From: Neoechinorhynchus agilis
Taxonomy: Eukaryota > Animalia > Acanthocephala
DNA length: 64,000 bases
Direction: 5' to 3'
Assembly (NCBI GenBank): GCA_051530055.1
Contig: CM121342.1
Coordinates: forward strand, 186,001-250,000
Position 1 is the first letter of the stretch, and each line of letters opens with the position of its first letter. The position numbers were made by a program, and so were the translations under genes. The notes under the pieces were generated by a model. The model ran no database searches and was not told the origin of the DNA. It was given only the letters and a program-made list of their open reading frames with translations. Shown in pieces: positions 5,011 to 63,949 of the stretch.

Positions 5011-5011
5011 G

Positions 5012-16330: not shown

Positions 16331-16332
16331 CA

Positions 16333-18655: not shown

Positions 18656-18659
18656 ACTG

Positions 18660-29389: not shown

Positions 29390-29488
29390 TGTTTGTTAGA
29401 AATAGACGCTGGCATGACGGACCAGGGGTCCTGAGGCAAAACGTAAATTGATGTTGAGCGAGGGCCTGATTGTATTTTAGATGTTTAC

Positions 29489-29529
29489 AAAACCTGAAGA
29501 GGAGACCGGCGAGTCTCGAAAATTCGATT
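29489..29529 (+). ncRNA. Unit-2 copy of the hammerhead relic
   Basis: Identical core to 13957-13997. Confidence 0.6.
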
Positions 29530-29559
29530 AAATAAATAAATGTCTGGGTGAAAGACGTC

Positions 29560-31473: not shown

Positions 31474-31475
31474 CA

Positions 31476-33798: not shown

Positions 33799-33802
33799 CT
33801 GC

Positions 33803-36084
33803 ACGAGGCGGCGTAATCGAGCCCTGTATTTCGCGAACACTCCAAGGCTTGCGGACGAGGTGTTCAAGGATGCAAAGCGGCGAGATTGTACACTTAGCAT
33901 TGATCACACAGTGGATCATTATAGAAAGCTATTCGAAGGGGATGATCAAGCTCATACCAGGCCGGCTACTTCTGAACCTACAACGGATGAGCGGTGGCCG
34001 TCAATCACAGTGGTGGAGGTTAAAAATGCCTTGAAAGGCATAAAGACCTCAAGCGCTCCTGGGCCCGACCGAATAACGGTGAGAGACATCCGTGCCTTCG
34101 ACCCGTGCTTGGTTGGGATGACGTTGTTGTTCAACTTCGTCATGCAAACTGGTCGACCACCACAGTCGTGGTTCGAGTTGAAAACTCTACTTTTGCCAAA
34201 GGCGAGCGCGCCACCAGCGAAGCTAAAAACTCAGAGTGGCTGGAGACCTATAGCGATCTCCTCCATTATAATACGGATCCTGCACCGCATTCTAGTTGGA
34301 AGGCTTCGATGAGTATGCAGCCTCGATGATGGACAAACGGCGTTTGACCCTTCGGCATGTTTTGCTAATTTACTAACTTTGCGGAGCGTAGTAAGAGAGA
34401 AAAGGGCAAACAAGCAACCTCTTGCAGTTGCCGTGCTTGACGTAAAAAGTGCCTTTGATACTGTGTCGCACGGTGCGCTTGAGGAACCACTTCGTAACAC
34501 TATCTTAGCAGATATGTGATGAACACATTCCGCGGAAGCCGTACGAGGATCCACATGTCTAATTCGAGGCCCTCAGATCCCATCAGGCTCCTAAGAGGAG
34601 TGAAGCAAGGAGACCCCGCTATCCCCATTGCTATTCGCGATTTGCGTCGACGAGGCACTGCAAGAGGTTCGCAATCTTCATGGACGATGTCCTTCTACTG
34701 GCGGATGATTACGCGAACGTCCAAAAATTATTGACATTCTTCAAGTTAAGCTCAAAGAGAACATGCTCTTTCTGAGCCCAGAAAAATGTCAAACATATCG
34801 GCAAAGCTATAAATGCGGGAAGCTGGTAGTGGACATGGAGACCGGTATTCGTATAAATGGAGTCGTACTCAAAGCCATCATCGAAGGCGATCCAGTGAAG
34901 TACCTAGGCGACACTCAGTGGAAGGAGACCACACTAGATGAAGCGAAAAGCGCACTGGAAAACCTTTTTGCCGTTGCTAGGAGCGTCCTTGTATCGCCCA
35001 CACAGGCAGCGCACCTATTGAATGATTACGCGGTGCCATCCCTGTTGGCTAAGCTCGGAGCCTCATGGGATATATCGTCCACGAACCTGAGACGTATCGA
35101 CGAGCTGTGGAGATCTAAATTGAAGAACCTCCCCAAGCTTCCGAGGAATCTCAGCGATGGCGCATTTTATGTGCCACTCTCAAAAGGTGGTCTAGGATTC
35201 AGAAGCCTGGAGCAGGAAGTGCAGTGCACACGGTTCAATGCTTTGAGAGCAGTTTTGGATAAATTCGGAAGCGCCATTGATCTCCGCAAAGAGATCGGTT
35301 CACTAACGGACCACCTCAAAAAGCTAAGTGACCAACACGAGCTTAGTCAGTAAATTCACGCGGAATATTCCAAACGCAAAGACGCGACGAAGCAAACGCA
35401 TGGTCATGAGTGCTTTACGGACGGGCTTGTTGACCGAAATCTTATATCGTTTCGGTATAGACAAGCTCGGTACAACTCTTACGTAGAGCACGTAAAGCTT
35501 CGGCTTCAGCTCTTAGAGGTTGGTTCAGTCCTTAACCGAATGGACCATCAACGTGGCAAGTCGTGTCGGCGTTGTACCGAGAAGGTCGAATCCTGTTCTC
35601 ATGTGCTCAATGGATGTGAGTACACCTCAGCCATAATGACCCGGCGCAATGACAGGGTGCAATCGCGCCAGGCATGGACGTTGGCGAAGCGGCCTAGGCC
35701 AAAATTTGAGGTTTTGGAGCAGAACCGGTTTCATGACGAGGCCGGCGATCTGCATAAACCAGATCTCATTTTGCGCAACAAGTCCAGTGGCAAGGTGCTC
35801 ATAGCAGACGTTGCTGTCCACTACGAGACTTGAAGAGATCGTGGTGAAGCTGTCATGAAGGGCAAGGAAGACAAGTACGAACCAATTGTTACGGTAGTGG
35901 CCGCACACTTTAAAGTTGAACAACATAAAGTTGCCACTATTGGTCTCGCAGTGGGGTCACGTGGGACATTTACCCAATCCTTGCTCCGCCGCCTCAAGCT
36001 CCTCTCTATGGGGAATAAAACGGCGTTGAATATGGCAAAAACAGCGGCAAAACAGTCGTTGGCCGTATTCCACGCTTTTATGGG
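33803..36084 (+). mobile_element. Unit-2 copy of family A (plus strand), with CCHC and RLE readable
   Basis: CRRCTEKVESCSHVLNGC, KPDLIL, ADVAVHYE. Confidence 0.9.
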
Positions 36085-36126: not shown

Positions 36127-37805
36127 AAGCTGCATTTATTGAGTACAAATCAAATATTTTAAGATGTTTTTACTTTTCGGTCCGTCTTGGGGTCTCTTCT
36201 TTTAAATTCCTGGTATATTCTTTATCCAGTGCTTTTTCTTTTTGCATTGAAACGTGATCTTTATGTTGTCGTTGCCCGGGGCAACATTTATTGGTCCCTT
36301 AGGGCCCTTCTTCTGCCCATAAAAACGTGGAATGCGGCCAACGACTGTTCAGCCGCTGTTTTTGCAATATTCAGCGCCGTTTTATTCCCTATAGAGAGGA
36401 GCTTCAGGCGGCGGAGCAAGGATTGGGTAAATGTACCGCGCGACCCGACTGCAAGACCAATAGTGGCAACTTTATGTTGTTCGACTTTAAAGTGTGCGGC
36501 CACTACCGGAACAATCGGTGCGTACTTGTCTTCCATGCCCTTCATGACGGCTTCACCTCGGTCTCTTCCTGTCTCATAGTAGACAGCAACGTCTGCTATG
36601 AACACTTTGCCACTGGACTTGTTGCGCAAAATGAGATCTGGTTTGTGCAGATTGCCGGCCTCGTCATGAAACCGGTTCTGCTCCCAAACCTCAAATTTTG
36701 CCCAAGGTCGCTTCGCCAACGTCCATGTCAAGCGCGATTGCACCTTGTCATGGCGCCGGGTCATTATGGCTGAGGTGTACTCACATCCATTGAGAACATG
36801 AGAACAGGATTCAACCTTTGCGGTACAACGCCGACATGACTTGCCACGCTGATGGTCCATTCGGTTGAGAACCGAACCAACCTCTAAGAGCTGAAGCCGA
36901 AGCTTTACATGCTCTACGTAAGAGCTGTGTCGACCTTGTCTATACCGGAACGATATAAGACTTCGGTCAACAAGCCCCTCCGTAAAGCACTCATGACCAA
37001 GCGCTTGCGTCGTCGCGTCTTTCCACTTTTGTATGCAATACTTTTGGAATAATCCGCGTGGATTGACTTGACTCAGCTCGGGTTGATCACTAAGCTTTTT
37101 GAGGTGGTCTGTCACCGAACCGATCTCTTTGCGGAGATCAATGGCGCCTCCGAATTTATCCAGCACCGCTTTCAAAGCATTGAGCCGTGTGCACTGCACT
37201 TGCTGAATGTGTTCATCACATATCTGCTAAGATATTGTGGACACCACGTCATCCCAACCAAACACGGATCGAAGGCACGAATGCCTCTCACCGTTATTCG
37301 GTCAGGCCCAGGTGCGCTTGAGGTCTTTACGCCTTTTAAAGCATTTTGAACCTCCACCACTGTGATTGACGGCCACCGCTCATCCGTTATAGTTTCAGAA
37401 GTAGCCGGACTGATCTGGATGTTTCCGGGATGAGCTCGATCATCCCCTTCGAAAAGTTTCCTATAATGATCCACTGTGTGATCGATGCCAAGTGGACATT
37501 CTCGCCGCTCTGCATCCTTGAACACCTCGGCCGCAAGCCTTGAGGTGTTCGCGAAATACAGAGCTCTGTTACGCCGTCTCTTAAGCCCCCGCTCCATGAA
37601 TCTATTCAGGCCACGAAGCCTAACGCATGGGTAAGTGCCTGAGTTATCGATCCATATATTATATACGTGCCTTCCGACACCAGGGCAAAAAATTCGGCGT
37701 TCATTCTTATCGAAGGGGGAGTGGACCGTGAAATCGCAGGAGTATGCTGCGGCAGCAGCGAACATCACAAAACAATGGAGATACAACCGTTCCTTTCTGG
37801 AGCCC
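36127..37805 (-). mobile_element. R2-like subfamily A' inserted in 28S; 5'-truncated, RT core deleted, CCHC-RLE ORF intact (36288-37199)
   Basis: 5' junction 28S ..GGACGTAACT|GGGCTCC; 3' junction AATAAATGCAGCTT|TAGCC. Confidence 0.92.
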
Positions 37806-37852
37806 AGTTACGTCCACCGTTTACCCGCGCTTAAATTAATTTCTTCACTTTA

Positions 37853-37883
<31 letters not shown>

Positions 37884-40604
37884 CGTCAACACCGATTACA
37901 GCTATCGCAATGCTTTGTTTTAATTAAACAGTTGGATATCCCTTGTCCATACCAGTTCTAGGCCAGCTGTTTAACGCTGATCGGATCCCCGCGCAAGAAG
38001 CGAGCGTACCCGTCTGGATACGTCGAACAGACGCGGAGCATAGCTATCGCTGCCCACAGTACGCAGCACCAAGTTCCGTCCTCGAAATCGATTCTTTCGA
38101 CAGAGCAAATAACTGAGACAGATCCAAGAGTCGACAACATACCGCTTCTCGCGACAGCCCGGCCAGCTCAGCTTGTAGAGCCAATCCTTTTTCCGAAGTT
38201 ACGGATCTAATTTGCCGACTTCCCTTGCCTACGTTTCCCTATCGACTAGAGGCTACTCACCTTGGAGACCTGCTGCGGAAATCAGTACGAACAGGTACGG
38301 TCTGAATATTTTCGCACCCAGATTTTCAAGGACAATACGAAGCGCTCGGTACATCGCAGGATTCGCGCTGCATTACGGAACGTGTACCCTATCAACAGAC
38401 GATATAATTCCAGGGATAAAGTTCCTAACAAAGAAGAGAAAACTCTTCCCCAGACTTCGTATAGTTATTCTCTGGGATTGCTCGTGTCACCACTTATGCT
38501 GAACATCATCTGCCCAAGAAGAACATCTGAATAGATCAAGCATAAACCGCATTCTGGCTCGGGAATATTAACCCGATTCCCTTTCGATTGTATTGCGCAA
38601 TGCAACACGCTTAATCACGAATTTGCACGTTTTCTTAGGATCGGCTGATCCATGTCCAAATGTTGTTCACATGGAACCTTTCTCCACTTCAGTCTTCAAT
38701 GCTCTCATTTGAATACTTGCTCCTACCACCAAGATCTGCACTAGCGGCGGCTTCACTCCACCTCACGGTGCAAGTTTCAACACCACCGCATACGCCCTTC
38801 TACACGTCAAGCCATTTGTACATTTGTGTCTGGCATCGACGGTCAAGCATGGATATACGTCTCCAGCGCCATCCATTTTAAGGGTCAGTCGATTCGGCAG
38901 GTGAGTTTTTACACACTCCTTAGCGGATTCCTACTTCTGCGGCCACCGTCCTGCTGTCAATATCGACTGACACCTTTCATGGTATCTCATGAGAGGCACT
39001 TTTGGCACCCTAGCTCAACGTTTGGTTCATCCCACATCGCCAGTTCTGCTTACCAAAAATGGCCCTCTTGGTGCCATCGCATTTACACCCGACACTCAGC
39101 AGCAGCATAAGCAACTGTGAAGAAGTGACCGAGCTTATTACCCATTTAAAGTTTGAGAATAGGTCGAGGACAATTCGTCCCCAATGCCTCTAATCATTCG
39201 CTTAACCAGATAAAACTGTCTTATGCAACACCAGCTTTCCTGGGGGAAACTTCGAAGGGAACCAGCTACTAGATGGTTCGATTAGTCTTTCGCCCCTATA
39301 CCCAAATCTGACGATTGATTTGCTCGTCAAAAACGCTACGGACCTCCACCAGAGTTTCCTCCGGCTTCATCCTACTCAGGCATAGTTCACCATCTTTCGG
39401 GTCTCAACATGTACGCTCAATTGCGAACAACAACCAACAGTACCTTGCATGTGCCATCCATCATAGGTGATGACCCGGCTAACGGCCAATAACCGCAGCT
39501 GGTTATCACAATCATTAACAAACTCGCGTTAACTATACTATCCAGCTTTATTGATCTGGATAACTCGCGCATTTGTTGAACTCCTTAGCCCGTGTTTCAA
39601 GACGGTTCAAATGATGCCGCCGTTTTACCCGCATTATCTTCTCGAACATCCGACTGAATCCGCAATCAACATCGACGAACAAGCCTAACAGTGAGTGAAG
39701 CAATACCGAAAGAATCCAACGATGCTGTATTCTTTCGGTGTTGTATCACTCACTGTTAGGCTTGTTCGTCGATGTTGATTGACGAACAAGCTTAACAGTG
39801 AGTGAAACAACACCGAAGAACAAGCCTAACAGTGAGTGAAATAACACCGAAAGAATCCAACGATGCTGGCGATTACGTCATTGGAATGCTCAATTTTAGT
39901 TTAAAAACTCAACCTCAACCGACCGTTGCCTGCAAAGGCAATTTGACCACCACATAGATATGTGCTCTTGCGAACTCATCCAATGTCAATTCACCAATAT
40001 CGACAAAGTCAATAGGTGAAGTTCAACGCGTCTGCGGCAGAGGCAAAGTCATCCAGAGCGTCAGCCAACAAATTGCGATGTACGCTGCAGTACACATACA
40101 CGAGTTTGTGTATGTACCAGCAGATAACACATCTGAATTGCCAAGACCGAACCTTATGCGTACCCATTTGCTTTTCAATGTGCAGTTTCACGTACTATTT
40201 AACTCTCTTTTCAAAGTCCTTTTCAACTTTCCCTCACGGTACTTCTTCGCTATCGGCACCGCCGTCATATTTAGTTTTGTATGGAGTTTACCACATATAT
40301 TTGAATTGCAATCTCAAACAATTCGACTCACAAATCAGTTCTAGGGAACAGCAGTCAAGGCGTAGCAAATACGGGACTATCACCCTCTTCGGCCAATGCC
40401 GTATTCAACCTGGACTTATTGCCACGCAACTGAACCCACAAACTGATCGTACACCACAATTCGCAGCTGACAAGTCAGCGCGATTCAGTTATGAACTATT
40501 CCCTGTTCATTCGCCATTACTATGGGAATCCCTGTTGGTTTCTTTTCTTCCGCTTATTGATATGCTTAAGTTCAGCGGATTCTCCCATCCAAACTGAGAA
40601 CGTG
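37806..40604 (-). rRNA. 28S: 28S rRNA 5' portion, up to ~15 nt before the R2 site
   Basis: CCGCTGAACTTAAGCATATCAATAAGCGG at the 5' end; GTTGACGCAATGTGATTTCTGCCCAGTGCTCTGAATG near the 3' break. Confidence 0.96.
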
Positions 40605-40949
40605 ACTTTCATGCAAATTCTGCTAATAAAAGTATTATGCAACAACGTGTACTCTCCTCATCTTACACAACTCATCATCATCTACTCGAACGTAGAACGC
40701 ACGATCAATATTTAGTCGACTCAAATACCTTCACAATTATTGAACCCTTTCACCGTCAACAGTATTGATTCACGTGTTGCATAACTATATTAGCAGTAGC
40801 ATCTCTGCAATAATTTTTTCTCATTTACCTTATCTTAGTTTCCTGCGCGTCACCCAGAGGCAAACGCAGTAACCGTAAAGTCAATGGCAACGATCAGAAG
40901 ATCAATTTCCATTGACATTCACCCACACTTGCATACTTTAGCATTAAAT
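40605..40949 (-). other. ITS2
   Basis: Lies between the 5.8S and the 28S. Confidence 0.85.
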
Positions 40950-41104
40950 GTTACTCAGTCGGATGTGGCTGCGAATATTGCATTCACAGTCGCCATTTGC
41001 GTTCGAACATTTTCCGTTCCAGGAGATCTGCATTTCGCGGAACTTATCGCACTTTGCGGCGTTCTTCATCGAACGACGGTCCAAGTGATCCACCGCACAC
41101 TGTG
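40950..41104 (-). rRNA. 5.8S: 5.8S rRNA
   Basis: GCGGTGGATCACTTGG..TCGATGAAGAACGC..TTCGAACGCA on the minus strand. Confidence 0.93.
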
Positions 41105-41373
41105 TGTATTTATATATATTGACATCATGCCTTCGAACGTGCGCATCTTGTGCACACGTACGCGACCACACCATCATGACCTTTGGTTTACAAAGACTCA
41201 CGATGACGACGACCACCACGACCACAACTGTCTCTACGTCACTACCAAGATCCCACTGTTTTTTGAATATAGTCACAACTGTGACGATTACAAACGCGTA
41301 TTCAACCACGTTGCCAGCTCATGACGATAGTCAACGACCACCTTTTCCAATTTAACTTGTCTACGTTGATACC
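41105..41373 (-). other. ITS1 (partial, fused to a truncated 18S)
   Basis: Position upstream of the 5.8S; the 18S 3' end is missing. Confidence 0.7.
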
Positions 41374-41794
41374 TCGCGCTCACTAGGAATTTGTCTTTCA
41401 CGAAGAATAATTACAATCTCCTATCCCAATCGTGAAAGCCATTTATGATTCCCTGTTCCTTACGAAACAGGAATGCCTTTTGAAGCCTCCATTGTAGTGC
41501 GCGTGCAGCCCCGAACATCTAAGGGCATCACAGACCTGTTATTGCTCAACTTTGAGTGCCTCACGACACTTGTCCCTCTAAGAAGCGTTTTGACGGCGTT
41601 ACCACTCAATAACAAGAATGATATGAGGGCTTGCTCGTCACACCAATTAATAGGCTAGAGTCTCGTTCGTTATCGGAATAGCCATGCACCACCACCCACC
41701 GAATCAAGAAAGAGCTGTCAACCTGTCAATCCTCACGGTGTTCGGACCGAGTATGTTTTCGTGCGTTAAGTCAAATTGAGCCGCAGGCTCCACT
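41374..41794 (-). pseudogene. 18S rRNA fragment with an internal ~32-nt deletion
   Basis: Homologous to ~63290-63742; cggaata is joined to gccatgcacc, skipping aaccagacaaatcactccaccaactacgaacg. Confidence 0.9.
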
Positions 41795-41799
41795 ACCAG

Positions 41800-43289: not shown

Positions 43290-45902
43290 AAAAAGAGAAA
43301 ATGGAATTGGTCAAGAGAATGAACTACTGGCCGCAACTATAAACAATATTAACTTAAAATCCCATGTTTCACAACTTTGAGCGCTATCACGTGTGCTTAT
43401 AAAATATATATTTGTTGAACTAATATCCGTGTTACGAAGGGGTGAATTCCAATGTATCACAAAGGATGTTCGTTCATAAGCATAATGTTGCTCTGTGGGA
43501 ATGCTCTATTTGTCTGAAATACGAATGCAAGGAAGTAAGATCAATGGGCCCTCGCCTAAAGAACTGTCAAGAAATTTTCACGGACAAGACAAGAAGCATT
43601 CGCAAAAATATGCGGGACCAATGCGCAATACAAGACAAAGGCAATTCGTTACACTCTACTCTGGTGCAAGGAGCCCAACTGTATGCCCAGTTTGTTCACT
43701 AAAAATTATTGGACGTGGGCAATTCAATTATATAGTTGGTCATATAAAAATCTGCCATGATTGTATGGATTTCAAATGGAGCTGCAACAATTGCAACAAT
43801 CACACCTCATCATCTTTTATATTTGCCAGAGACCACTTCAACCAGTGTGTGAAGCCAATAACGAAAACGAGCAACAATAACAATAAAATAACCTGCATAA
43901 ACACTGACAGTGAGAAAAGGTCTACCTCAGCTTTGATTGTCGACCCAGCGGCAACAGAGCAGAAATCTACCTTATTTCCAACATGTAGTGAAAGTGAATC
44001 TTTTGAATCTCATTATTGCTACATATTTCGGCGGATTGATCTACATTAGAAGTATCAACAACTCAAGAAGCTCTCAATTTCCAGGGAGCAGAATTAAACA
44101 GTCCCGCTACGTCGATGCCTGACCAGCGTGAATTCCGATCTCATGTAACTCAACATGTTCCGCACATGCAGTCAAACAATTTTACTTCGGAAGATTTTTT
44201 GAGTATCTATTTAGTTCTCCACTTAATGGCAGGATCCTCGCTACCGAAATTGCTTGGAACGCGAGCGCAAAATAACGCGCAATCACTCAGGGGCAATCAA
44301 TTCCCAGTTTTTGGAAGAATTAGACGGCCGGTACAGCAATTACTTACGACGTGGGAAGCCGATCAATTCCGAGTCAAATACATGTTCAAAAGCAAAGGAG
44401 TTATGACTTCGAATTGTGAAACTTAGAAAGTCACCAACGATCGCGTTGTCCGCGGTTACGTTTCATATTTTTGACAATCCGGTCCTAATTCGAAAAGTTC
44501 AGGCGCAACTGCATGAAGAAATCGGAGCAAATCTATAATACTTTGAATGCCTCTGACAAACAATGCTGGGCGCAAACATTACAATAGAGGATGCGATTGA
44601 AGCGCTAAAGAAATGCCGAGTGATATCACAACACTTTATATTATGGGCAGCAACGTCCGCTTATGAATGCGACTTCTTTGTAAATGGGTCAAACACAAAT
44701 GCTCCTCTAAGGATTCGATCCAGAAAAATAGCCAAGGCATCGTATAACATTTGTTTTTTACATCAGGGAAGTGATGGTACCTCTTCAACTCGGATGAAAC
44801 GTTAAGAGTTCGTACATTTCTCGAGAAATGTAACGGATCTTAATAGTCTTTTTGAAGATACCAAGCAAGCGGGTTTGTGTCCTACACAAGCAGCGCGTAT
44901 CTCGGCTACAAGCTGCTCACTGAATTTTGTCAACTTCCCTAGACAAGCTTGAACAGCACTGGAGGACAAAACTGAAGAAGTTGTTATTTCTCCCCCATTT
45001 TTTAAATGATGGGGTAATGTTCTTGCCATTAAGCAAAGGAGGACTTGGGTTCTCGTCAATTAAGAATTTCGTGATGAGTTCAAGAATGAAGAGTTACACT
45101 GCAGCAAATTCACACTATCGTGACTTGGACGAAGACCAGCGTATTTACAAAAATCTCGAGGAATATGTTATCAGCATCGCTGGATCACCGTCCAACTTCT
45201 CAGTCCAGAACATGAGGAATATTTAAACAAGATACCTCGAGAAAAAGGGGGAAGACGCAACTACTTAATCTCTGGGAATAAGCGCGATCACGGGAGGACA
45301 TTTTAATCATTCGGCACGGACTTTCATGGGCTCAACAGAAGCGATGGGGCTCTCGGTGGGAGATTCAAACCGAGAACCGTATCTACGATAAACAAGGGCG
45401 TCTCAACAAGCCAGATCTAATACTAGTAGACCGACAGCAGAAAAAGGCAAAAATAATTGATATTGCGGTTTATTACGAGACAACAAAGGAGCGAAGCGAA
45501 AATACTATCCTGGAAAAAGAAGATAAATATAAACATATCACGGAGCAAATTGCATCGCTATATAATCTGGAACTGCATGATGTGAAAACAATTGGATTGG
45601 CAGTTGGAACGCGTGGAGCGTACACGCCCGAATTACTTAAAGGATTACGCTTGTTCAATCAATCAGAAAAGACCGCGGAAAATATGTCAAAAACAGCAGC
45701 CGATAAATCAATTCAAGTTTACAACAACTTTATGGGCCACACTTGGTCACTGCGTTGACAGAAAACAAATTACAATTAAAAAAAATCAAGAGCAACACAA
45801 AAACAGGCAAACAAACAAAACTAACAACCAAATCAAGATAACGATGAAAAAAAAGATTGAATGCACAAACATCTATGTGCTAACATCTAATAAATGCGAA
45901 TT
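43290..45902 (+). mobile_element. R2-like family E: zinc fingers, OTU-like domain, RT core deleted, thumb and RLE remnants, 3' UTR
   Basis: CPVC..HIKICH / CNNC..HFNQC; LRIVKLRKSPTIALSAV; LPLSKGGLG; ends AATAAATGCGAATT|TAGC. Confidence 0.85.
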
Positions 45903-51039: not shown

Positions 51040-52260
51040 AGCTCCTTCCCCTAAGTTCCTTGTAAGTTTAAGAATCTTCTTTAGTCTGCACCTACATTGC
51101 TCGTCTTTACGTCTGAGATTAGCGGGGCGATGTCGCATGAGGCTTCGAGCTTAACCATTAAGGATGGAATTGCATAGTCGTTTGCTTTGATTTGAGGCCT
51201 CGAGAGCTTTCGCAGGGATAAGTACCTGACTCATTAATCCAAACGATGAATTTGTGGCTGTGCGAGATCGAATTCGAAGAGGAACATCGTCGCTTGGAGT
51301 TTGCACTACAAAATCGCATTAATGGGCAGTCTCTGCGGCCCTCAATATGAAGTGAACTGATAGTTCGTTGTAATTTTTAGTAGCATCCAGTGTGTCATTT
51401 AATGTGAGATTTGCATCAAGAATCATTTTTACTATATGAAGTGAAACAGGGTCCAAGATGCGGTCCTTTACTCTCCTCCATTGTGTAGGTTTCTCGAGGA
51501 CGAGAAAGGCGGCGGTCACCAGTACCATTGTTGAATTTTTCTTTAGCTTTATAATTTTGAGGCCGAGACTTTGAGCCTTGACAAAATCTGTGACTGTACG
51601 AAACGCATTTTGCTGGATTGAAGGACAATCCGATGCTTCGCAATTCTGTAACCGTAACATCGAGCTTATTCTGAAGTCCGGCCTTATCCTTACTGACCAA
51701 CAAAATATCATCTTCGCCATAACTGCTGCCCGTTCCAATGAGGTCTCATAGTAGACCGCCACATCTACTATATAAACCCGATCATTTATGTTTGTCCTCA
51801 CAATGAGGTCGGACTTGTGTACGTTGCCGCCGTCGTCCATAATGTGATTTTTTCTATCGACGGTGTAACTGATGCCTCGGATTGAATCTCTTTTGGCGGA
51901 TTTTGCTTCTACTGCATTTAGTGCGCCTATAAAGACTTTCACGACGTCGTAGTGTCTTTTAATCATTGCTTCCGTCGAGAAGTCACACTGATTAATTACG
52001 TGCAAGCACGTTTCTGTTTGATGGGCGCAATGGCGACAGGCTTTTGTCCTATTGTTTGAGATCCTTGCCATAACGGCACCAACCTCTAGAAGTTCAGCTC
52101 GCATTTTTATCAATTCCGTGTATTGCCTGTGATGGCACTGTATGTATCTGAATGATAACATTTTTGGGTCTGCGAATCCGTTGGTAAAGGCCTGATATCC
52201 GTTTGCCTGTGTTTTTGCCTCCGCCCATTTTTTTTTCGTACTCTGCGTTAACGCCGCTTT
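51040..52260 (-). mobile_element. R2-like family H, scrambled fragments
   Basis: Order on the minus strand: CCHC/RLE, then RT motifs 5-7, then OTU-like domain, then thumb. Confidence 0.82.
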
Positions 52261-52604: not shown

Positions 52605-55022
52605 GGGACGCGGTTTATTGTAAGGATATCGCTCATTCAGTTAATTACAATTTGTTAAATGTCAATTTTAATTCGTTGTTTTACTTAGAATTGAGACTAT
52701 TGATTTCAAAATAGTACTGCGCGAAGTAGACTACCGTTACTTTGTCGAAACTTTCCTCCTTCTCCCCATAAAATAGTGAAAGACTAAGACTTCCTCGAGC
52801 GGCGGCATTTGCCATTTTAATTGCCGTGGGTTTCCCTAGCTTAAAGTTTTCGAGTCGATTCCAAAGAACAGGTGAGTATGTCCCTCGTGAGCCGACGGGT
52901 AGTCCAACTGTGTATACATTGGAACATTCTACGTTGAACCGTCGTGCAATCGCTGGCCGAGTTACGTTGTATTTTTCTTGCTTGTACTTAGCCATCGCTG
53001 CTGCTTTGTCTGTATCATTTTCGTAAAAAACAGCAACGTCTACAACATAAATTCGATCAGTTTTGTGATCTTTTACAACCATTTCGGGCTTGAATAGGTT
53101 CCCATTGTCATCATGGACGTGTATATCTTCCAATACCTCCATTGAATTACTGTTCCTATGGCTTAGCTCTTGTATGAACGTGCTCTGTACAGCATCATGC
53201 CTTCTAATCATCGCGTCCGTTGAACTTTTACATTGATTCAGGACATGGAGAACTGTCTCCGTCGGGTTCTTGCAGTGCCAGCAAAATTTGCTTCGATTTT
53301 TGTCCATGCGCGAGAGCACGCTCCCCACCTCCAGCAGTTCGCATCTTAATTTTACGCTCTCTACGTAGTTCCTGTAGTGATCTTGCCGGTAACGATATGA
53401 TATTAAGCTTGGGTCGATAAATCCGTTTATGAAAAATTGAATTCCGTTTGACTGCGATGTTGCCGACGCCCACGATTGTTTCCAGTACTCGATTTTGAGT
53501 CGAGAGAAGTTCCTAAGTGACTCTTCGTTTAGTTAGCCAATGCCTACTTCTTTGATAATCATTTGAATGAAATTTCGCTGCTTTCCTGTTAAGGTATGTG
53601 TGTCCGGAAACCTAGTATTCAAACTCAAATAAGCTGATATCCTTGATTGGCACACGTTAAATTTTATTGATCTAAATCCTAAGCCGCCATGTTTGAGTGG
53701 CAGATGAAGGAGGCCTGTATTCAAGTTTTCACAATTGGCTTGCTATCTATTATCATATATCCCTGCTTGAATTTGTGGGAGTATGTTCGACATTTGTTCG
53801 GGTTAAATGAAAGACCCACATTGGCGAGCATTTCCTTTGCAATATCCAGTTTTGCTTGGAGACCTTCCGCAGACTTGCTAATGAGCAATATGTCGTCTGC
53901 ATATACTAAGTGTCCCAACCTGACTCCTTCCAAGTCAAGGTCCAGGTCCATTCCTCTCAACTTTTGAAGCGTTTCTTCCAAATTAACGCAAAAAGGAAAG
54001 GCGAAAGGGGGTCACCCTGTTTAACGCCCCTACGAAAATATATGGGCCCCGACGGCTCAGATTTTGGGATATATATTCTTGTAAATGAGTCGGACAAGGA
54101 GTTTTGGACATATCTGGTCAAGTAGGATGGAATATCTTTCCTCCTGAGAGACTGGACAATCGCTTTGTGTTCCACACTATAAAACGCCGCCGTTATATCC
54201 AGTACCGCAAGCGCTATCTCCTTGCGGCTTGAACGACTGTTGCGCATCGCGCCACGTAAAATCATATTGTTCGCCAAGCACGCGGAACTGCTAAAGGCCG
54301 TCTGGCCTACGTCGAGACTGCATCGACGTCGGATCCGACTGAGCAATACTCTATGAAAAAGGCGCATGAGGCAAGATGCTATAGTGATAGGACGCCAGCA
54401 GTCCAACTTGCGCAGTTCGTTTGCGGACTTTCCAATCTTTGGAATAAGAATAGTCTTATTTTCTTTAAATTGAATCGGCGGAGACCCATTCTGCAGCGTC
54501 AGATTGAATAGAACCGTTACTAAAATGAGCGATTTATCGAAGGAAGATACCTTTCTAAGCGATAGACCATCGGGACCAGCGGAACTGGATCCCTTCATAC
54601 CAGCTAAACTTTCTCGAACTTCCTCTACGGTAATCGACCTCTAGATTCTCTCCCACACTCCATTACATTCCTCATTGAAGTCAGACACATTGGAGTCGGA
54701 GTCTGCACCGTGTCGCCCCTCAAATACCTCACGGTAGTGGGAGAATGCCTCTCTGCCGCTAATCGCAAAAATCGCGTTCTTCTGTTCCCCCTTAAAGACA
54801 TTAGATGCTAATCTAGATGTGTTGGAGAAATATTGAGCACTGTTACGGCGTTTCATTACCAATTTATGCTGGAGTGAGTTTATCCCACGGTTACGCACGC
54901 AGGGATAACAGCCGGACCCGTCAAGCCATATGTTGAATACATGGTGTGCTACCAATTGTGACCTTATTTTTGCGCACGAGTCACTAGTGGGGCTGTGGAT
55001 ATTAAAATCACTGCTATAAGCT
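52605..55022 (-). mobile_element. R2-like family G, 5'-truncated, with internal deletion and frameshifts
   Basis: WRPITIAS, GVKQGDPLSP, YADD, CWHC..HVLNQC, KPEMVV; 3' end AATAAACCGCGTCCC|TAGCC. Confidence 0.92.
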
Positions 55023-58000
55023 CTGAGGGAACGGCCAATTACAATCACGAAATCATTGATAGTTTCAGTAGGATAGATCGGATAGATTGCTTAAACACGG
55101 ACGCGACGGACGGTACTTTTCTCACTGCAGGCGCGGAATCCCAATTTACGGTCGAGGAGGCATACGAGTTTCTGCACAGCGCAGCAGCTGCCCCTGGACT
55201 TCAACCAAGGTATAGGGCATTCTTGTCAAGTGAGAGGGTGTTCTTTCGTTTCCAAAACAGAATTAACACAAAATTGGTCGATGATTTTTGCACCCGATTC
55301 ACTAAATACATAGTAGGTACCAAAAGGGCTAGCCCCAACTTATCCGTTGCCAAAGAGAAGGGCCTCCGCATCGTGAAAATTAGGAAATCCTCCCATATGG
55401 CGTTGTCTGTCGTATCGTTTCACGTCTACAGAAACCCTTACCTTTATAGGAAGGTGGCGTCCGAAGTCGCGAATTTTGTAATTGGTTCGGTGGATAGATA
55501 TTTGACCTATAACTTTGAAGACGCTAATTTGAGCCTCGGCGAAATGATCGACGATTTGAAACGGGGGATATGTACCTCAGATGATCTGGTTTTTCGGGCA
55601 GCAGCGGAGCTTTACGGAGTAGATTTTGTCTTGCATAGTTCGACCAAGGACTTGGACTCAAGAGTAAGATGCCCGCTTGTGGCAAAATAAGTTTTCAACA
55701 TCTGGACCGATCAGTCCGGTTGCTACCCCTGTGCTCGATCTCGAGGGCTTAATAAGTACGCGCAGAGAGCCATCCTTAGAAGGAGATATCGCGCAATGTA
55801 TTTCTCGAATACATCCCGGCTGGCCAATAGGATATTTAGAGATACCGCCAGGGAAGGGGAGTTTTCAGTTGGCAGAGAGGAGGCTGTCCAATATTTCAAG
55901 GACCTTTTTGAGGATTCAAGCGATATTGCTCCCTGGCAATTCTTCAGAACTACGCAGTAGACTCTGGAAGGCAATAACAGTAGAAGAGGTTCGTCAGTCA
56001 TTAAGGGGAATGAAAGGATCTAGTTCGGCGGGTCCCGACGGAATAAGTTTGCGTAAACTTGCGTCCTTTCACAAAAGTTTAACTCTTACTACTCTTCTCT
56101 TCAACCTAGCGCTACAAAATGGAGGTCCTCCTACCCAATGGAGGGAGAGCAAAACTCTCCTAATACCTAAGACTGGAAAATCTGCCCAACAACTAGGGAC
56201 GCTAGAAAATTGGAGGCCCATAACAATTGCATCTGGCTTACTGAGGCTTCTCCATCGAATATTACTACAACGACTAACGGCGGTATGCACCCTGGATGGG
56301 GGTCAGACTGTAGGTAGCGGGTCGGCCTGCCTGGTCAACAATATCATTCTTAAGGGGGCACTTCGACAATGCCGGGCAAAGCGTGTTGGGGTGGCAGTCG
56401 CTGTACTGGATGTGTCTAGTGCATTCGATAAGGTAAGTCATAGCGCAGTAATGCGTGAGTTAGCCCATCAGGATGTGCCCGAGTACCTCAAGAGATACAT
56501 TAGTAATTCATTCAGAGAGGCTTTTACGCGACTGCAGTTCCCAAACGCAAAACAGTCTGAAAGGATTTTCTTCAAGCGAGGAGTTAAACAAGGTGACCCT
56601 TTATCTCCGTTTTTATTCTCCCTCTCTTTAAAGCAACCACTTAGAGAGGTAAAGAAGCTTAATAATGACCTTGAAATTGACGGATATCGAATCAGCCATT
56701 TAACATATGCAGACGATCTTCTAATGTTTAGTAAGTCACCCGCGGACCTCCAACGTAAGCTTGATGTTGCTGAGGCTGCATTGCGGAATGTGGGTTTGTC
56801 TTTTAATCCTACCAAATGCGTTTCCTATAGCCACCATTTTAATGGCGGTTCGTTAATTGTCGACGCAAAACCAGTGGTAAGCATTTCGGGCGTCCAAGTT
56901 CGCACGGTAGTAGACGGAGACAATATCAATTATTTAGGCGGAAAACCTTGGTCGGCGTTCAATCAACAGGAGGTGAGGGATAGGATAGAAAGGGCTTTTA
57001 GCTTGACCAAAGAGGCAGGCTTGTCCCCCACTCAGGCAGCACATTTACTCAACGACTATTTTATGCCGTCGATTATCTCACAACTAGCAATTACACTAGA
57101 AATGAGCGCCACGTCACTGAGGTAAATCGATGATATGTGGCGAACCCGTATTAAAAAGTTGTTGTACTTGCCAAGGTACTTCAATGACGGGTTAGTGTAC
57201 TTACCACTAAGAATGGGCGGACTTGGAATAAAATCCATTTTAAGAGAGGTCTGTTGTGCCCGCCTGGCTGCTCTGAGATGCGCAGAACTGAGGCTACTGA
57301 AACTTAGCAGTTCAGTTGTCGGGCAGGCAGTCAGTTTTAAAGATTTAAATTGTGGAAATTCTGATGATTTTAATGAGTTTAATGTCTTAGAGAATTTTAA
57401 CGTTTTAATGCATTTTAAGTTCAGCTCTTTGGTGGAGCAATTTGGTAAATCCCTCGTTTTACTTTCTAAAAAGTTTGCAGAGGGTGGAGCGAATGCCGAG
57501 TTTGCTCGTCAATGGGAACGAGCAAAGACGCAGGCTAACGGCCACAAAGCATTTATAAATGGGTATGTAGATTCTAATCAGCTTTCAATTAGGTACAGAC
57601 AGGATAGACACAGGCAGTTTACGGAGCTGGTCAAGATGCGAGTTGAACTTCTAGAGGTGGGTCCCGTTTTTGCAAGGATGCCGAGTGAGAGGCTGAAAAC
57701 TTGCCGCAGTTGCAATTATGAGAGTGAAACTTGCTTGCACGTATTGAATGCTTGCGAGTTCTTGACGGACGCCATGGTCAAGCGACACAACGATGTTCAA
57801 AGATGCTTCGAAACAGCAATTAATCGATCTTACCAAGATAGTGATACAAGCACATCAGGCAAAGGTGGTGGTTTTACCGTCGATAACAATAACCACATAT
57901 TCGACGATGGTGGAAACCTTCACAAGCCAGACTTGCTTGTAAAAGAGGATAGTAGCGGCCGAATTTACATTGTCGATATAGCTGTCTACTATGAGACCTC

Positions 58001-58410
58001 TTTGGAACGAGCAGCAAGTATCGGAAAGGAAAATAAAAAGAAGTACGAAACAATACGATCAGCGGTTGCCAAAAAATATAACTGCACAGTTAGCAGCGTA
58101 AAAACGGTAGGTTTACCCGTTAAATCCAGAGGTACTTATTCTCCCTTCCTTTTAAATCGGTTGGCAATCTTCAAATTAACAAGGGATGCCGCGATCAAGA
58201 TGGCTAATGCAGCGGCAAAAGGAAGTATCAGGATCTTCCACAACTTTATGGAAAGAAGAAGAAATGAACTGTGAAAGATTCTTAAAGGAATGCAACGAAT
58301 GCAAATAATCACAACTATATGAATCAATCAGTCAATCAAACCAAACTATGGACAATAATTGAATTGATTAATAACACCTGTAAATCAAGCTCCATAATAA
58401 ACCGAGTCCC
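55023..58410 (+). mobile_element. R2-like family C, the most complete coding copy (OTU-like, RT, CCHC, RLE); stops at 55688 and 57123, one frameshift ~55930
   Basis: ORFs 54995-55690, 55677-57125 and 57135-58274; 3' end AATAAACCGAGTCCC|TAGCCAAATG. Confidence 0.95.
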
Positions 58411-58442
<32 letters not shown>

Positions 58443-58926
58443 TGCATGAATGGATTATTGAGATTCCTACTGTCTATGTCTGCAGCCTAGCGAAACCACA
58501 GCCAAGGGAACGGGCTCGGAGAGTAACAGCGGGGAAAGAAGACCCTGTTGATCTTGACTCCAGTCAGTCTCTGTGAAGAAACATGATGGGCGTAGAATAG
58601 GTGGGAAGCCGCGCCGGTGAAATACCCCTACCATCATTGTTTCTTTACTTACTCAGTGATTCAGGTAGCGTTAATTCGCTAATTGCGATATATAATCCTT
58701 TCTTTAGTGTCGAAGGAGTGTCTGGTCTGAGAACACAGACTGATTGGGAGTTTGACTGGGGCGGTACATCTGTTAAAACCTAACGCAGGTGTCCTAAGGC
58801 AATCTCAGCGTGGACAGAAACCTCGCATAGAGCGAAAGGGCAAAAGATTGCTTGATCTTGATTTTCAGTACGAATAAAGACAATGAAAGTTTGGCTTGTC
58901 GATCCTTTTGAATTTTACGAGTTTTA

Positions 58927-58973
<47 letters not shown>

Positions 58974-59077
58974 GGCCAAGCGTCCACAGCGACGTCGCTT
59001 TTTGATCCTTCGATGTTGGCTCTTCCTATCATTGGGATGCAAAAGTCCCATAGCGTTGGATTGTTCACCCATTAATA

Positions 59078-59115
<38 letters not shown>

Positions 59116-59595
59116 TAGTTGTACCCTACTGTTGAGCTGGTTGTTGTAATAGCAATCTTGCTAAGTACGAGAGGAACCGCAGGTTTGGACATCAGGTACA
59201 CGCACTCGGTCGAGAGGCCGATGGTGCGAAGCTTCGTCCGCAGGATTACGACTGAACGCCTCTAAGTCGGAAGCCTCCCTAGGAGCAACAACACTAATGC
59301 GCACTAGGCGGTCTGGATTTTTTACAAATGCGAGAACGAGCGAAGTTTTCCACGCGGAAATTACGTTTCTTCTCGACGATTTATCCGCCAGCGGCGACTT
59401 TATCATCTGCGCTCAGTGTCTACCTATAAAATGAATTGACCAGCGTAGTTGGCAGCCGTGTTTAATATCTCGCTGTACTTGTGCGTTAAATCATTTGCAG
59501 ACGACTTAATTCTCGGTAAACGTCTCGTAAATAGTAGAGTAGCCACCAAACTGCGAACTATTGAGACTTATGGTTTTAACCGGGGTATTTGTGTG
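58411..59595 (+). rRNA. 28S: 28S rRNA 3' portion from the R2 site
   Basis: TAGCCAAATGCCTCGTCATCTAATTAGTGACG ... AGTACGAGAGGAACCG ... AAATCATTTGCAGACGAC. Confidence 0.96.
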
Positions 59596-61602
59596 CTAAA
59601 GACACACGTCACCCATCCATATACCCCGAGTGACGCAATAGTGCACAGACTTGATAGAAAATGCTTCAGAAATGACAACGCCTATGCTTCAAAGTACGAA
59701 ACTTCTTATGCTGTGACGACTATGATGGTCCGATCAACAACCTTGAAGTAGGATGGCGCGGTCGAGAAGCATATGATGTGTGCTATTACGTGATAATAGG
59801 TGGATATCCGGGGTGAAACTTAAAGTCTCGTGACGTAAGCAATGTAAATGTGTTGAACGGGGTTCAAAACCTGGGTATATATATGAGGGACACCCTCAAT
59901 CGGGGTCCCTCTCAAGGCAAAGCATAGGACAGGCTATGCAAGGTTGTGCTAGACGGTGACGTCATTGATAGCTCTCTGAGCGCGACAGAGAAGCATGTGG
60001 CATAAAAAGGGTTCATGCTGGTGTGACATAATTGAACGCTCGATGAGCTGGGCCGAGAATCGTGCGGTATAAAAAGGTTCATGTTGTTGACCTAATTGAA
60101 AGCTCTCTTAACACGGCAGAGAAGCAAGAGGTGTCAGGTATGTTACGTAAGCAAGGTTGGCAAAAATGTCGAATATTGACATATACACGGAAGAAAAATA
60201 TTCAAAATTGAGAAAATGCTAAGTCTTATGACGTAAGCAATGTAAATGTGTTGAACGGGGTTCAAAACCTGGGTATATATTAGGGACACCCTCCATCGGG
60301 GTCCCTCTCAAGGCAAAGCATAGGACAGGCTATGCAAGGTTGTGCTAAACGGTGACGTCATTGATAGCTCTCTGAGCGCGACAGAGAAGCATGTGGCATA
60401 AAAAGGGTTCATGCTGGTGTGACATCATTGAACGCTCTATGAGCTGGGAAGAGAATCGTGAGGTATAAAAAGGTTCATGTTGTTGACCTAATTGATAGCT
60501 CTCTGAGAACGACAGAGAAGCATGTTGTAAAAAGGGTTCATGATTATGTGACGTAATTGAAAGGTCTGTGAGCTGGTCCGAGGAACGTGCGGTGCAGAAA
60601 GGTTCATGTTGTTGACCTTATTGATAGCTCTCTGAGAACGACAGAGAAGCATGTGGTAAAAAGGGTTCATGATTATGTGACGTAATTGAAAGGTCTGTGA
60701 GCTGGTCCGAGAAAGGTGCGGTGCAAAAAGGTTCATGTTGTTGACCTAATTGATAGCTCTCTGTTGATAGCTCTCTCTGAGAACGACAGAGAAGCATGCG
60801 GGTAAAAAGGGTTCATGATTATGTGACGTAATTGAACGCTCTATGAGCTGGTCAGAGGAACGTGCGGTGCAGAAAGGTTCATGTTGTTGACCTAATTGAT
60901 AGCTCTCTGAGAACGACAGAGAAGCATGTGGTAAAAAGGGTTCATGATTATGTGACGTAATTGAAAGGTCTGTGAGCTGGTCCGAGAAAGGTGCGGTGCA
61001 AAAAGGTTCATGGTGTTGACCTAATTGATAGCTCTCTGAGAACGACAGAGAAGCATGTGGTAAAAAGGGTTCATGATGGTGTGACGTAATTGAAAGCTCT
61101 ATGAGCTGGTCCGAGCAGCCTGTGGTGCAAAAAGGTTCACGTTGTTGACCTAATTGATAGCTCTCTGAGCGCGACAGAGAAGCGTGTGGCATTAACATAT
61201 CGATGTCAATCTATCAATCAATTCATTGATATTGTGTTTGTGATTGATTTAAATTGGTGGCAGTTAAAACTGTTAGTTGGCGCTAGCGGTTTATAGGCCA
61301 CATTATTGGATTGATGTGATTACGGAATGCTTACTTAGATGTTGTTGAACTCTAAGTAGCTGGTGGTTGGGCTGTAAATATTGGCGGAAATGCCACTTGA
61401 TGGCGTTATGTGATCGTGGAAAATTATCTGACCTACGGGTCAGTTAGAACTATTGTTTACTCATATAAATGGCGTAAACGGTTGTTGAATATCCTTCTTG
61501 GTTAAAGCTGAGATATTTTGTGTTTCGGTTCGAAACCGAAACTGTGCCTTTGCGAACGTTGTATCACCTGTTTTTTGTAACAGGGTTCAAAACCTGGGTA
61601 TA
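59596..61602 (+). other. rDNA intergenic spacer
   Basis: Lies between the 28S end and the ETS/18S. Confidence 0.9.
59823..61195. repeat. IGS subrepeats: two ~400-bp promoter-bearing units and ~129-bp units built from two ~65-bp halves
   Basis: The block from 59823 recurs from ~60223; ttgatagctctctgagaacgacagagaagcatg recurs every ~129 bp. Confidence 0.9.
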
Positions 61603-61606
61603 CATG
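61583..61606 (+). promoter_or_regulatory. Putative Pol I promoter/initiation site, with spacer duplicates at 59860 and 60258
   Basis: GGGTTCAAAACCTGGGTATA is exact in all three places; the last copy is ~490 bp upstream of the 18S. Confidence 0.6.
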
Positions 61607-62090
61607 AGATGGCTGCTCCGTCTGCCGTCGTTTCGCCGATGGCTGCATTGGCTTTTGCTATGCTGAGTATTATATTTGGTAATGTAAACCGTGATGTGGT
61701 GCTTGCTTAATTGTCTCGTCTAATTAAGACGAAATAGCCATTGTGCTACGATGTATTGACATTAGAGTTGAAGTTAACCAATGGTTGATTTCTCGGTGGA
61801 GCTTTGTTGATATTGGAAATAATTACGTCACATAAGATGATGTTAATTATTGGCTGATGATTATTGGTTTTAACAATCAAAATTAAATTCAAGTTAGTTG
61901 TTGTTGGACATAAGATCCGCGACAACTAGAAGCATTGTCGGGAAAAGTATCAGTGGGGGTTGTTATTATTCGACCTCCACTAGATTGTGGACGGTAGCAA
62001 TCACGTTAGTTTTTGTTACCACGATTTGGTTCACGGATGCACTATTGCTAAAATAGCAAGTGCGATTTAAGTGTAGTGATGAATGGTTGA

Positions 62091-63761
62091 TATCTGGTTG
62101 ATCGTGCAAGTAATTATATGCTCGTCTCAAAGATTAAGCCATGCATGTGCAAGTTCATACTTCATACGGTTGAAACCGCGAATGGCTCATTAAATAAGTC
62201 ATGGTTTATTGGATCATGCGAATCAGATATGGATAACTGTGGAAAATCTAGAGCTAATACATGCCACGTAGCTTCGACTTGCGGAGAAGTGCTTTTATTA
62301 GATCAAAGCCAATGACGTCTTAGGGCGTCAGATTGTGCTGACTCTGGGTAAAGTATGCTGATTGCATTGCCTTATTAGGCAGGCGACGTGTCTTCCCTAT
62401 CAACTATCGTTGGTAGTTTATACGACTACCATGGTCGTAACGGGTAAGGGGGAATCAAGGTTCGATTCCGGAGAGAGAGCATGAGAAACGGCTGTCACAT
62501 CCAAGGAAGGCAGCAGGCGCGCAAATTACCCAATCCCAGATTGGGGAGGTAGTGACGAAAAATAACGATGCCGTAATCTTCGGATTCGGCAATTGGAACG
62601 AGAACAATCAAAATCCTTTATCGAGGATCGATTGGAGGGCAAGTTCTGGTGCCAGCAGCCGCGGTAATTCCAGCTCGAATAACGTATGTTAAATTTGCTG
62701 CGGTTAAAAAGCTCGTAGTGGGGAGTCAGGAGATGAACTGTGCGCTGTCATGTCATAAAATGACGTGTATAGCATTGCACCAGATTCACTTCTTTAATTT
62801 CGCTGCTCCTGCGTCGTCGAAGACCCAATTAAGTTTGGGAGGCGCACTTTAAAGGGAAGGTGATTAACTACTTTGAGAAAATTAGCGTGCTTAACGCAAG
62901 CGACTTGCTTGAATACTGTTGCATGGAATAATGAGATAGGACCTTGGTTCTGTTTCGTTGGTTTCCGGAAGCCGAGGTAATGATTGATAGGGATAAACGT
63001 GGGCATTCGTATTGTGGTGTTAGAGGTGAAATTCGATGATCACCGCAGGACGTACAACTGCGAAAGCATTTGCCAAGAATGTTTTCATTAATCAAGAACG
63101 AAAGTTAGAGTTTCGAAGACGATTAGATACCGTCCTAGTTCTAACTATAACCTATGCCAACTGGGCATCTGGCGCTTGCAACAACAAAGCATCGCCAGGC
63201 ACCCCGCGGGAAACCAAAGTTATTGGGTTCCGGGGGGAGTATGGTTGCAAAATCGAAACTTAAAGGAATTGACGGAGGGGCACACCAGAAGTGGAGCCTG
63301 CGGCTCAATTTGACTCAACGCACGAAAACTTACTCGGTCCGAACACCGTGAGGATTGACAGGTTGACAGCTCTTTCTTGATTCGGTGGGTGGTGGTGCAT
63401 GGCCGTTCGTAGTTGGTGGAGTGATTTGTCTGGTTTATTCCGATAACGAACGAGACTCTAGCCTATTAATTGGTGTGACGAGCAAGCCCTCATATCATTC
63501 TTGTTATTGAGTGGTAACGCCGTCAAAACGCTTCTTAGAGGGACAAGTGTCGTGAGGCACTCGAAGTTGAGCAATAACAGGTCGGTGATGCCCTTAGATG
63601 TTCGGGGCTGCACGCGCGCTACAATGGAGGCTTCAAAAGGCATTCCTGTTTCGAAAGGAACAGGGAATCATAAATGGCCTTCACGATTGGGATCGGAGAT
63701 TGTAATTATTCTTCGTGAAAGAGGAATTCCTAGTAAGCGCGAATCATTATTTCGCGTTGAC

Positions 63762-63805
<44 letters not shown>

Positions 63806-63891
63806 CGAATGGTTTAGTGAGGTTTTCGGATAGATTGCATGGTGCCACAAGTGCAACTGCGAAATCTAAAAGTTTACCGAACTTAACCATT

Positions 63892-63947
<56 letters not shown>

Positions 63948-63949
63948 CA
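62091..63949 (+). rRNA. 18S: 18S rRNA (divergent; ~11-nt deletion near 62394)
   Basis: CTGGTTGATC..AAAGATTAAGCCATGC; GTGCCAGCAGCCGCGGTAA; GTACACACCGCCCGTC; AACCTGCGGAAGGATCA. Confidence 0.97.

Follow-up and report, generated by a model that had tools for sequence, protein, structure and literature searches.

An R2-type element in a ribosomal locus of Neoechinorhynchus agilis

We analysed a stretch of 64,000 nucleotides (hereafter the window) from the acanthocephalan Neoechinorhynchus agilis (GenBank assembly GCA_051530055.1, contig CM121342.1, positions 186,001 to 250,000 of the forward strand); positions below are those of the window unless stated otherwise. Its forward strand carries, at 54995-58274, one degraded, 5'-truncated retrotransposon of the type without long terminal repeats (non-LTR); it lacks zinc fingers and retains open reading frames (ORFs) of 231 amino acids (aa), of 482 aa with the reverse transcriptase (RT) domain RVT_1, and of 379 aa with a CCHC zinc knuckle and restriction-like endonuclease motifs (Table 1). 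This copy is interrupted by an in-frame TAA at 55688-55690, by a frameshift near 55940 that shifts the reading into the frame of the RT ORF, and by an in-frame stop at 57123-57125. An initial annotation, made from the sequence alone, had placed here a catalytically dead OTU (deubiquitinase-fold) domain fused N-terminally to the RT of 28S-targeting retrotransposons. The peptide that it quoted does lie at 55361-55736 in frame 2 of the forward strand, the in-frame TAA having been silently skipped, and falls within a module that a profile hidden Markov model (HMM) of 13 genomic domain copies (A1) delimits at 55142-55753 (E-value 8.9e-81). We are highly confident that a dead OTU-fold domain is an integral part of the single ORF in one R2 sublineage that occurs in acanthocephalans, the pseudo-OTU lineage, to which the window copy belongs as a broken member truncated at its 5' end.

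On its 3' side the window copy joins 28S rRNA at 58411, in line with the 28S targeting first proposed, and the 28S resumes with T-A-G-C-C-A-A-A-T-G-C-C, which we take from the R2 literature to be the sequence immediately 3' of where R2 inserts. When we searched all six frames of the 46-Mb genome with the N-terminal ORF, we obtained 74 matches, several of them in open frames of 1299-1403 aa, and among 14 loci that we fetched, intact single ORFs represent at least five families. The R2-site 15-mer follows the element in 9 of the 14 loci (five of those with ORFs longer than 1000 aa) and is absent, within the fetched stretch, after L033, L034 and L035. These three are intact families, and L035 is followed by a piece of 28S from further downstream; their junctions may differ or lie beyond the fetched stretch. 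Just past the R2 site (58411-58470), the 28S of N. agilis deviates from the usual animal sequence, with the insertion point unchanged.

Using the full-length protein of the intact locus L032 as a phmmer query against solved R2 proteins, we obtained an E-value of 1.8e-78 (about 1e-78 for 9nl2, 9nl3 and 9dou) and of 1e-35 for R2Bm. The alignment covers the RT, the thumb and the C-terminus and begins at query residue 592, at the motif that opens the RT N-terminal extension right after the OTU, which pairs with residue 292 of 9nl2. The L032 region homologous to window positions 57135-58274 aligns to the R2 C-terminus (E-value 5e-15), and RVT_1 is present in all intact ORFs scanned.

Architecture of the intact proteins

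The intact ORFs of 1299-1403 aa hold zinc fingers, OTU, RT and endonuclease in one frame, which bears out the proposed N-terminal fusion. From the N-terminus, they have one or two CCHH+CCHC finger pairs and a low-complexity, poorly conserved linker, then a three-helix unit and a pseudo-OTU of about 140 aa; after the RT N-terminal extension come RT and thumb, followed by a CCHC knuckle and a restriction-like endonuclease. The finger pairs lie at residues 89-238 of L032 and also occur in L033, L035, P0012, P0014 and P0020. The three-helix unit and pseudo-OTU form a module of about 210 aa, conserved between families at 35-50% identity in the intact ORFs and located directly upstream of the motif R-R-x-R-A-L-Y-F-x-N-T-S-R-L-A. 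Every R2-type open frame longer than 1000 aa in the genome carries the domain.

In AlphaFold2 models, the three-helix unit is predicted as three helices with a predicted local distance difference test score (pLDDT) of about 90, or 85 when modelled alone. A PDB profile search, Foldseek and a VIA-wide comparison returned generic helical-bundle matches for it, neither Myb nor R2. Some real OTUs have an N-terminal extension that aligns with its third helix, which may thus have arrived with the captured gene. Pfam scans, the alignment to solved R2 proteins and a fold search with the three-helix unit revealed neither ZnF1 nor Myb, the R2 Myb being hard to detect by sequence. As ZnF1 is called universal in a 2026 review of R2 (PMC13580325), this may be a lineage that does without the standard DNA-binding unit.

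Contigs from four runs of one study cover intact L032 at 95% identity or more, including the OTU region without joints (by pieces 4563-6033 and 4714-5699, among others), with an adjacent 28S bin about 1000 times deeper; this coverage is compatible with transcription.

Evidence for an OTU fold

The match to the OTU cysteine proteases of Pfam (PF02338; MEROPS C85) that the initial annotation proposed to look for with HMMER was not obtained: single-sequence scans gave none for the window ORF (E-values up to 1) or for the seven intact ORFs scanned (E-values up to 0.1), and a PF02338 scan of the whole genome reached two host genes and no R2 copy. Weak Pfam matches to UVSSA_N and CBM39 were discarded as noise.

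Profiles gave a different picture. Searched against 1.84 billion representative proteins, A1 yielded 30 matches, among them P0018, P0023, P0028 and P0030 (E-values of 1.1e-5 to 8.5e-4), which Pfam itself calls OTU at E-values of 2e-12, 1e-11, 4e-16 and 3e-4, respectively. We then compared A1 by hhalign with an alignment of the Pfam-positive OTUs and one host OTU (A3) and obtained a probability of 97.3% and an E-value of 2.6e-11 over 128 columns; against the single host OTU sequence, hhalign gave no match. OTUD5 came second in the profile search of PDB sequences, weakly (E-value 0.4) and in the same register as in the other tests.

The closest active OTU proteins (the P0018 group; loci L057 and L058) lie in dense arrays of small unannotated genes, an arrangement reminiscent of viruses or protists.

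For the intact L032 domain, AlphaFold2 gave a model with a mean pLDDT of 87. All of the model's top 50 Foldseek matches in the PDB are OTU domains, with OTUD3 (4bou) best (E-value 2.9e-7, TM 0.80 by target), followed by OTUD5, nairovirus OTUs, OTUD1, OTUD2 and Otu2. With VIA-align, 133 of the 141 OTUD3 residues align onto model residues 70-207 (Z 16.6, root-mean-square deviation 2.6 Å), and the neighbours of the model in the ESM Atlas are all OTU or otubain clusters. The domain is thus predicted to have the OTU alpha/beta fold, as first proposed from the sequence pattern. The resemblance could in principle be due to chance or to an artefact of modelling, a reading that draws on the missing single-sequence Pfam match and on the E-value of 0.4 for OTUD5 in the PDB profile search. 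Yet the sequence and structure evidence are independent of each other and converge on one register, and we give this reading a probability close to nil.

Loss of the catalytic residues

In the alignments, L032 has N-S-T-M and the window copy S-S-H-M where real OTUs have D-G-N-C, and G-T-Y and G-C-Y, respectively, where these have S-H-Y; hmmalign and hhalign agree on the register of these motifs, and helix 1 of the model begins with the Met standing in for the Cys. In the window copy the catalytic Cys is thus replaced by Met (codon 55400-55402) and the His by Cys (codon 55721-55723), the two replacements that had been claimed, and the Asp by Ser (55391-55393) as well.

Residue counts were drawn from 56 distinct genomic segments. 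The Cys position, covered by 40 of them, holds Met (15), Gln (12), Leu (10) or Ile (3). At the Asp position, likewise covered by 40, we found Gly (18), Ser (12), Asn (7) and one each of Thr, Cys and Val, and at the His position (31 segments) Ile (10), Thr (7), Cys (6), Leu (5) and one each of Gln, Val and Ser. No genomic segment has the canonical Asp, Cys or His, every intact ORF included, so that the intact copies with Cys and His that had been named beforehand as refuting a dead domain did not turn up. No window copy has Cys or His at the catalytic positions. Relatives from other sources have Leu, Ala or Asp at the Cys position. The W-G motif, which in OTUs helps to hold the ubiquitin tail and is invariant in real OTUs, is replaced by Leu, Ser, Ile and others at its first position and by Ser at its second. 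An alignment shift masking a Cys or Ser was considered and dropped, there being no conserved candidate within three residues of the Cys position. To judge from these residues, the OTU domain is catalytically dead.

A Y-P-C motif contains Cys203, which 30 of 31 genomic segments share, as do all 16 R2-type sequences spanning this position, other species included, and a protease or isopeptidase acting through non-canonical residues might use such a near-invariant Cys. This residue nevertheless lies on the last strand, three residues past the His position, instead of at the N-terminus of helix 1; the Cys loop of the aligned genomic copies has no conserved Cys, Ser or His, and no partner His or Asp is evident. 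We therefore consider an active enzyme very unlikely.

Selection, distribution and origin

For the pair L032/L042, the ratio of nonsynonymous to synonymous divergence (dN/dS) of the OTU core is 0.11, with a dS of 0.49. In deeper pairs dS is saturated, and the dN of the OTU core (0.17-0.66) tracks that of the RT that follows it (0.28-0.58). Purifying selection acts on the domain, whose evolution is about as slow as that of the RT, and the conservation without catalysis suggested from the start holds across the genomic segments. The loss of all catalytic residues and the broken state of many window copies are what would be expected if the domain were a functionless relic of a captured host gene in neutral decay. 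Against such decay stand the dN/dS of 0.11, a divergence that equals the RT's in families 35-50% identical to one another, and the presence of the domain in every R2 ORF above 1000 aa and in several species, and a relic is in our judgement most improbable.

The same dead module occurs in the RT-bearing proteins P0014, P0016, P0021 and P0026 of Pomphorhynchus laevis, from another acanthocephalan class, in P0010 (assemblies GCA_028748465.1 and GCA_028748445.1), and in P0012 and P0020, from two SRA-derived contigs; a word-based search with P0020 returned only P0020 itself. The 3' end of the P0010 element joins 28S at the R2 site, a junction seen by eye, the Rfam scan of foreign contigs having given no match. 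In the P0010 host too, the 28S past the R2 site deviates (T-A-G-C-G-A-A-A-T-G-C-C at the L047 3' end), with the insertion point unchanged.

We built a tree from the RT region only, excluding the OTU columns and leaving out P0065, P0068, P0071, P0072 and rows with fewer than 300 matched residues, and rooted it on two RT+Ulp1 proteins (P0066 and P0069). The ten OTU-bearing elements form one clade (Shimodaira-Hasegawa-like approximate likelihood ratio test, SH-aLRT, 100), so that a single gain of the domain suffices. This clade is placed among R2-like proteins that include R9 of Adineta vaga, few reference R2s on the tree being named. The 31 OTU-less R2-like proteins on the tree, R9 included, gave no significant match to the domain profile with the HMMER filters off. 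The two rooting proteins, which combine RVT_1 with an Ulp1 protease domain (PF02902), are NeSL-like.

Possible function of the domain

We regard the following account as the best explanation, with high confidence overall. An OTU gene was most probably captured once by the ancestor of the lineage; the captured OTU then lost Asp, Cys, His and W-G, and has been retained by selection since. The domain stands in the place of the canonical R2 ZnF1-Myb-spacer. Its mode of action is more tentative: we infer that it may be a non-catalytic basic scaffold or nucleic-acid-contacting module in the complex of target-primed reverse transcription (TPRT), where it would position the array of zinc fingers and the N-terminal extension of the RT on 28S target DNA or element RNA, a reading that we find plausible though short of probable. 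The isoelectric points (pI) of the cores are 8.9-9.9 (one is 7.2), with net charges of 0 to +9, and those of the nearest active OTUs are 4.7-8.6. A stricter version, in which the captured deubiquitinase fold, basic and rid of catalysis, replaced ZnF1-Myb and directly recognises 28S target DNA or element RNA in TPRT, seems to us doubtful.

The initial annotation had suggested ubiquitin binding or a scaffold. In the former vein, the dead OTU could instead be a reader that binds ubiquitin, SUMO or NEDD8, or else a chromatin or repair factor carrying ubiquitin, and so recruits or protects the R2 protein at the ribosomal DNA (rDNA). In keeping with this, the fold is nearly complete (the 133 aligned OTUD3 residues), the domain is under purifying selection, and those residues whose conservation is peculiar to the R2 version (N102-P103, S152, P202-C203 and R205), which in sequence adjoin former active-site elements, flank the former positions of the Cys loop, W-G loop and His strand; other transposons, moreover, carry OTU or Ulp1 domains (PMC2836005). 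Against it, the invariant W-G is gone along with Asp, Cys and His, and the domain is basic where its nearest active counterparts range from acidic to mildly basic. A complex prediction of the domain with the worm's own ubiquitin scored 0.00, which counts neither way on binding. Since W-G is lost, the cores are basic and the domain stands in the ZnF1-Myb-spacer position, the scaffold or nucleic-acid role is favoured, and we hold a reader to be unlikely.

Several points weigh against our account of a captured, dead OTU acting in the TPRT complex. The Pfam OTU model misses all copies, so that family membership rests on profile and predicted-structure evidence, and the structure of the domain is itself a prediction. 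The difficulty of detecting the R2 Myb by sequence leaves the lack of a Myb unproven. Any DNA, RNA or protein partner of the domain is one that we infer. Basic charge is weak evidence because the whole R2 protein binds nucleic acid, and with R2-only residues near the former active-site positions, a remodelled ligand pocket is equally possible.

Relation to known systems

We found no report of an OTU or deubiquitinase domain in R2 or other non-LTR elements in the full-text literature, a scope outside which Repbase and Dfam lie, and the belief behind the initial annotation that R2-site elements were without such a report has stood up within that scope. OTU and ubiquitin go unmentioned in a 2026 survey of R2 in 300 species of 12 phyla, Acanthocephala and Rotifera not among them (PMC13188248), and in the 2026 review of R2 diversity and engineering (PMC13580325). 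A 2016 survey has R9 as its sole entry for Rotifera and mentions no OTU domain or protease (PMC5035012), and the N. agilis genome and transcriptome paper mentions neither OTU nor rDNA, and retrotransposons only as expression hits (PMC12690905). The combination of a dead OTU with R2 was found in no paper and is apparently unreported.

Among the closest known systems are canonical R2 elements, above all those of lineage A (R2Tg, 9dou; turtle and other vertebrate, 9nl2/9nl3). They share with our elements the 28S site, a single ORF in which a CCHC knuckle and a restriction-like endonuclease follow RT and thumb, and a ZnF3:2 unit that the CCHH+CCHC pairs resemble in spacing (PMC13188248). The acanthocephalan proteins differ in the extra module (three helices and pseudo-OTU) before the RT N-terminal extension, in having no recognisable ZnF1/Myb, and in ORFs that are 200-300 aa longer.

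Ulp1 occurs in NeSL-1, and the NeSL Ulp1 retains its catalytic residues. Like our elements, NeSL-type elements with Ulp1 (C48) are site-specific non-LTR elements that have a restriction-like endonuclease and, upstream of the RT, the fold of a ubiquitin-like-protein protease, and the RT+PF02902 proteins P0066 and P0069 surfaced in our searches as distant relatives; the protease fold is, however, Ulp1 and not OTU, and clade and target differ. The OTU fold has also been recruited by DNA transposons: OTU domains are found in Ginger1 and Helitron, and Ulp1 in Mutator and Ginger1 (PMC2836005). There, the OTUs match PF02338 directly, whereas our element is a retrotransposon whose domain is, by its residues, dead and too divergent for Pfam.

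In the nairovirus L protein, too, an OTU lies upstream of a polymerase in one polypeptide, and viral OTUs are among the best structural matches of the R2 domain (Z 13-14). That OTU, in contrast, is an active deubiquitinase and deISGylase, the polymerase is an RNA-dependent RNA polymerase, and kinship with the R2 domain is seen in the fold only. The cellular deubiquitinases OTUD3, OTUD5 and OTUD1, the best structural matches, have the same secondary-structure order and register; the R2 domain differs from them in its replaced Asp, Cys, His and W-G, in being basic and in residing inside a retrotransposon protein.

Other domain copies and features of the window and genome

The profile HMM also located the further full copies and tails that had been announced in other families, none of them with the catalytic Cys or His (Table 1).

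Table 1. Domain copies, parts of the degraded element and adjoining features, in window coordinates
Feature	Position	Strand	Basis and remarks
Domain tails	10953-11129, 16332-16560, 26521-26697, 31475-31703, 37604-37798, 54878-55039		Profile HMM
Domain copy, another family	12305-12814	-	Profile HMM; Cys position Gln; duplicated at 27873-28382 (-)
Domain copy, another family	44233-44751	+	Profile HMM; Cys position Ile; with stops
Domain copy, another family	51194-51591	-	Profile HMM; Cys position Met; degraded
Inverted R2 fragment adjoining the window copy	52605-55069	-	Truncated within its own OTU domain; tail 54878-55039; 3' junction at R2 site near 52590
Three-helix subdomain, always before the OTU core	55142-55339	+	HMM positions 1-69; conserved F-T-x-x-E-A and H-P-R-Y-R motifs
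OTU-fold pseudo-protease core (predicted)	55340-55753	+	TAA at 55688-55690 inside frame
Start of RT N-terminal extension (R-R-R-Y-R-A-M-Y-F-S-N-T-S-R-L-A)	55754-55940	+	Translation
RT ORF of the same degraded element	55677-57125	+	RVT_1 at about 56163-56939 (Pfam E-value 5.3e-33); closed by stop 57123-57125
C-terminal part: CCHC zinc knuckle and restriction-like endonuclease	57135-58274	+	ORF list; weak zf-RVT match
3' untranslated region of the element	58275-58410	+	Between stop codon and 28S junction
28S rRNA resuming at R2 site (T-A-G-C-C-A-A-A-T-G-C-C...)	58411-59590	+	Sequence; 15-mer search; Rfam LSU 58522-59590

ORFs and domain fragments of window positions 10950-20500 recur at 26520-35400, shifted by about 15.1-15.6 kb (12299-12778 and 27867-28346 are one such pair), which suggests a large tandem duplication of the R2/rDNA mosaic. 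The rDNA orientations in the window are opposed, with a partial 18S, 5.8S and the 5' part of 28S at 37770-41796 (-) and the 3' part of 28S and a full 18S at 58522-63949 (+); the array is thus scrambled here and forms no clean tandem. In the intergenic spacer, a tandem repeat at 60488-61198 (-) translates, in two mechanical ORFs, into a recurring peptide (H-E-P-F-L-P-H-A-S-L-S...) and is probably just a spacer repeat.

Elsewhere in the genome, R2 matches near the start of contig C1 extend over about 20-360 kb, and amid these copies lies a five-unit polyubiquitin gene (C1:296155-297282, minus strand). Dispersed on C1-C3 outside the rDNA is a second family of RTs, which shares about 26% identity with the R2 RT and belongs to another non-LTR clade.

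Significance

R2 serves as the model system of target-primed reverse transcription, its engineering for gene insertion is under way, and its N-terminal set of zinc fingers and Myb is treated as defining. With a different module in the place of ZnF1-Myb, R2 architecture would be more plastic than recent surveys found. The pseudo-OTU lineage thrives as at least five families with intact ORFs in a 46-Mb genome and is present in another acanthocephalan class as well. It adds a retrotransposon case to the recurrent pairing of OTU and Ulp1 folds with mobile elements and viral polymerases, and a naturally inactivated OTU offers a handle on what such folds do beyond ubiquitin cleavage. If the domain did replace ZnF1-Myb in recognising target DNA or element RNA, a protease fold would have been exapted as a nucleic-acid-handling module of a retrotransposon.

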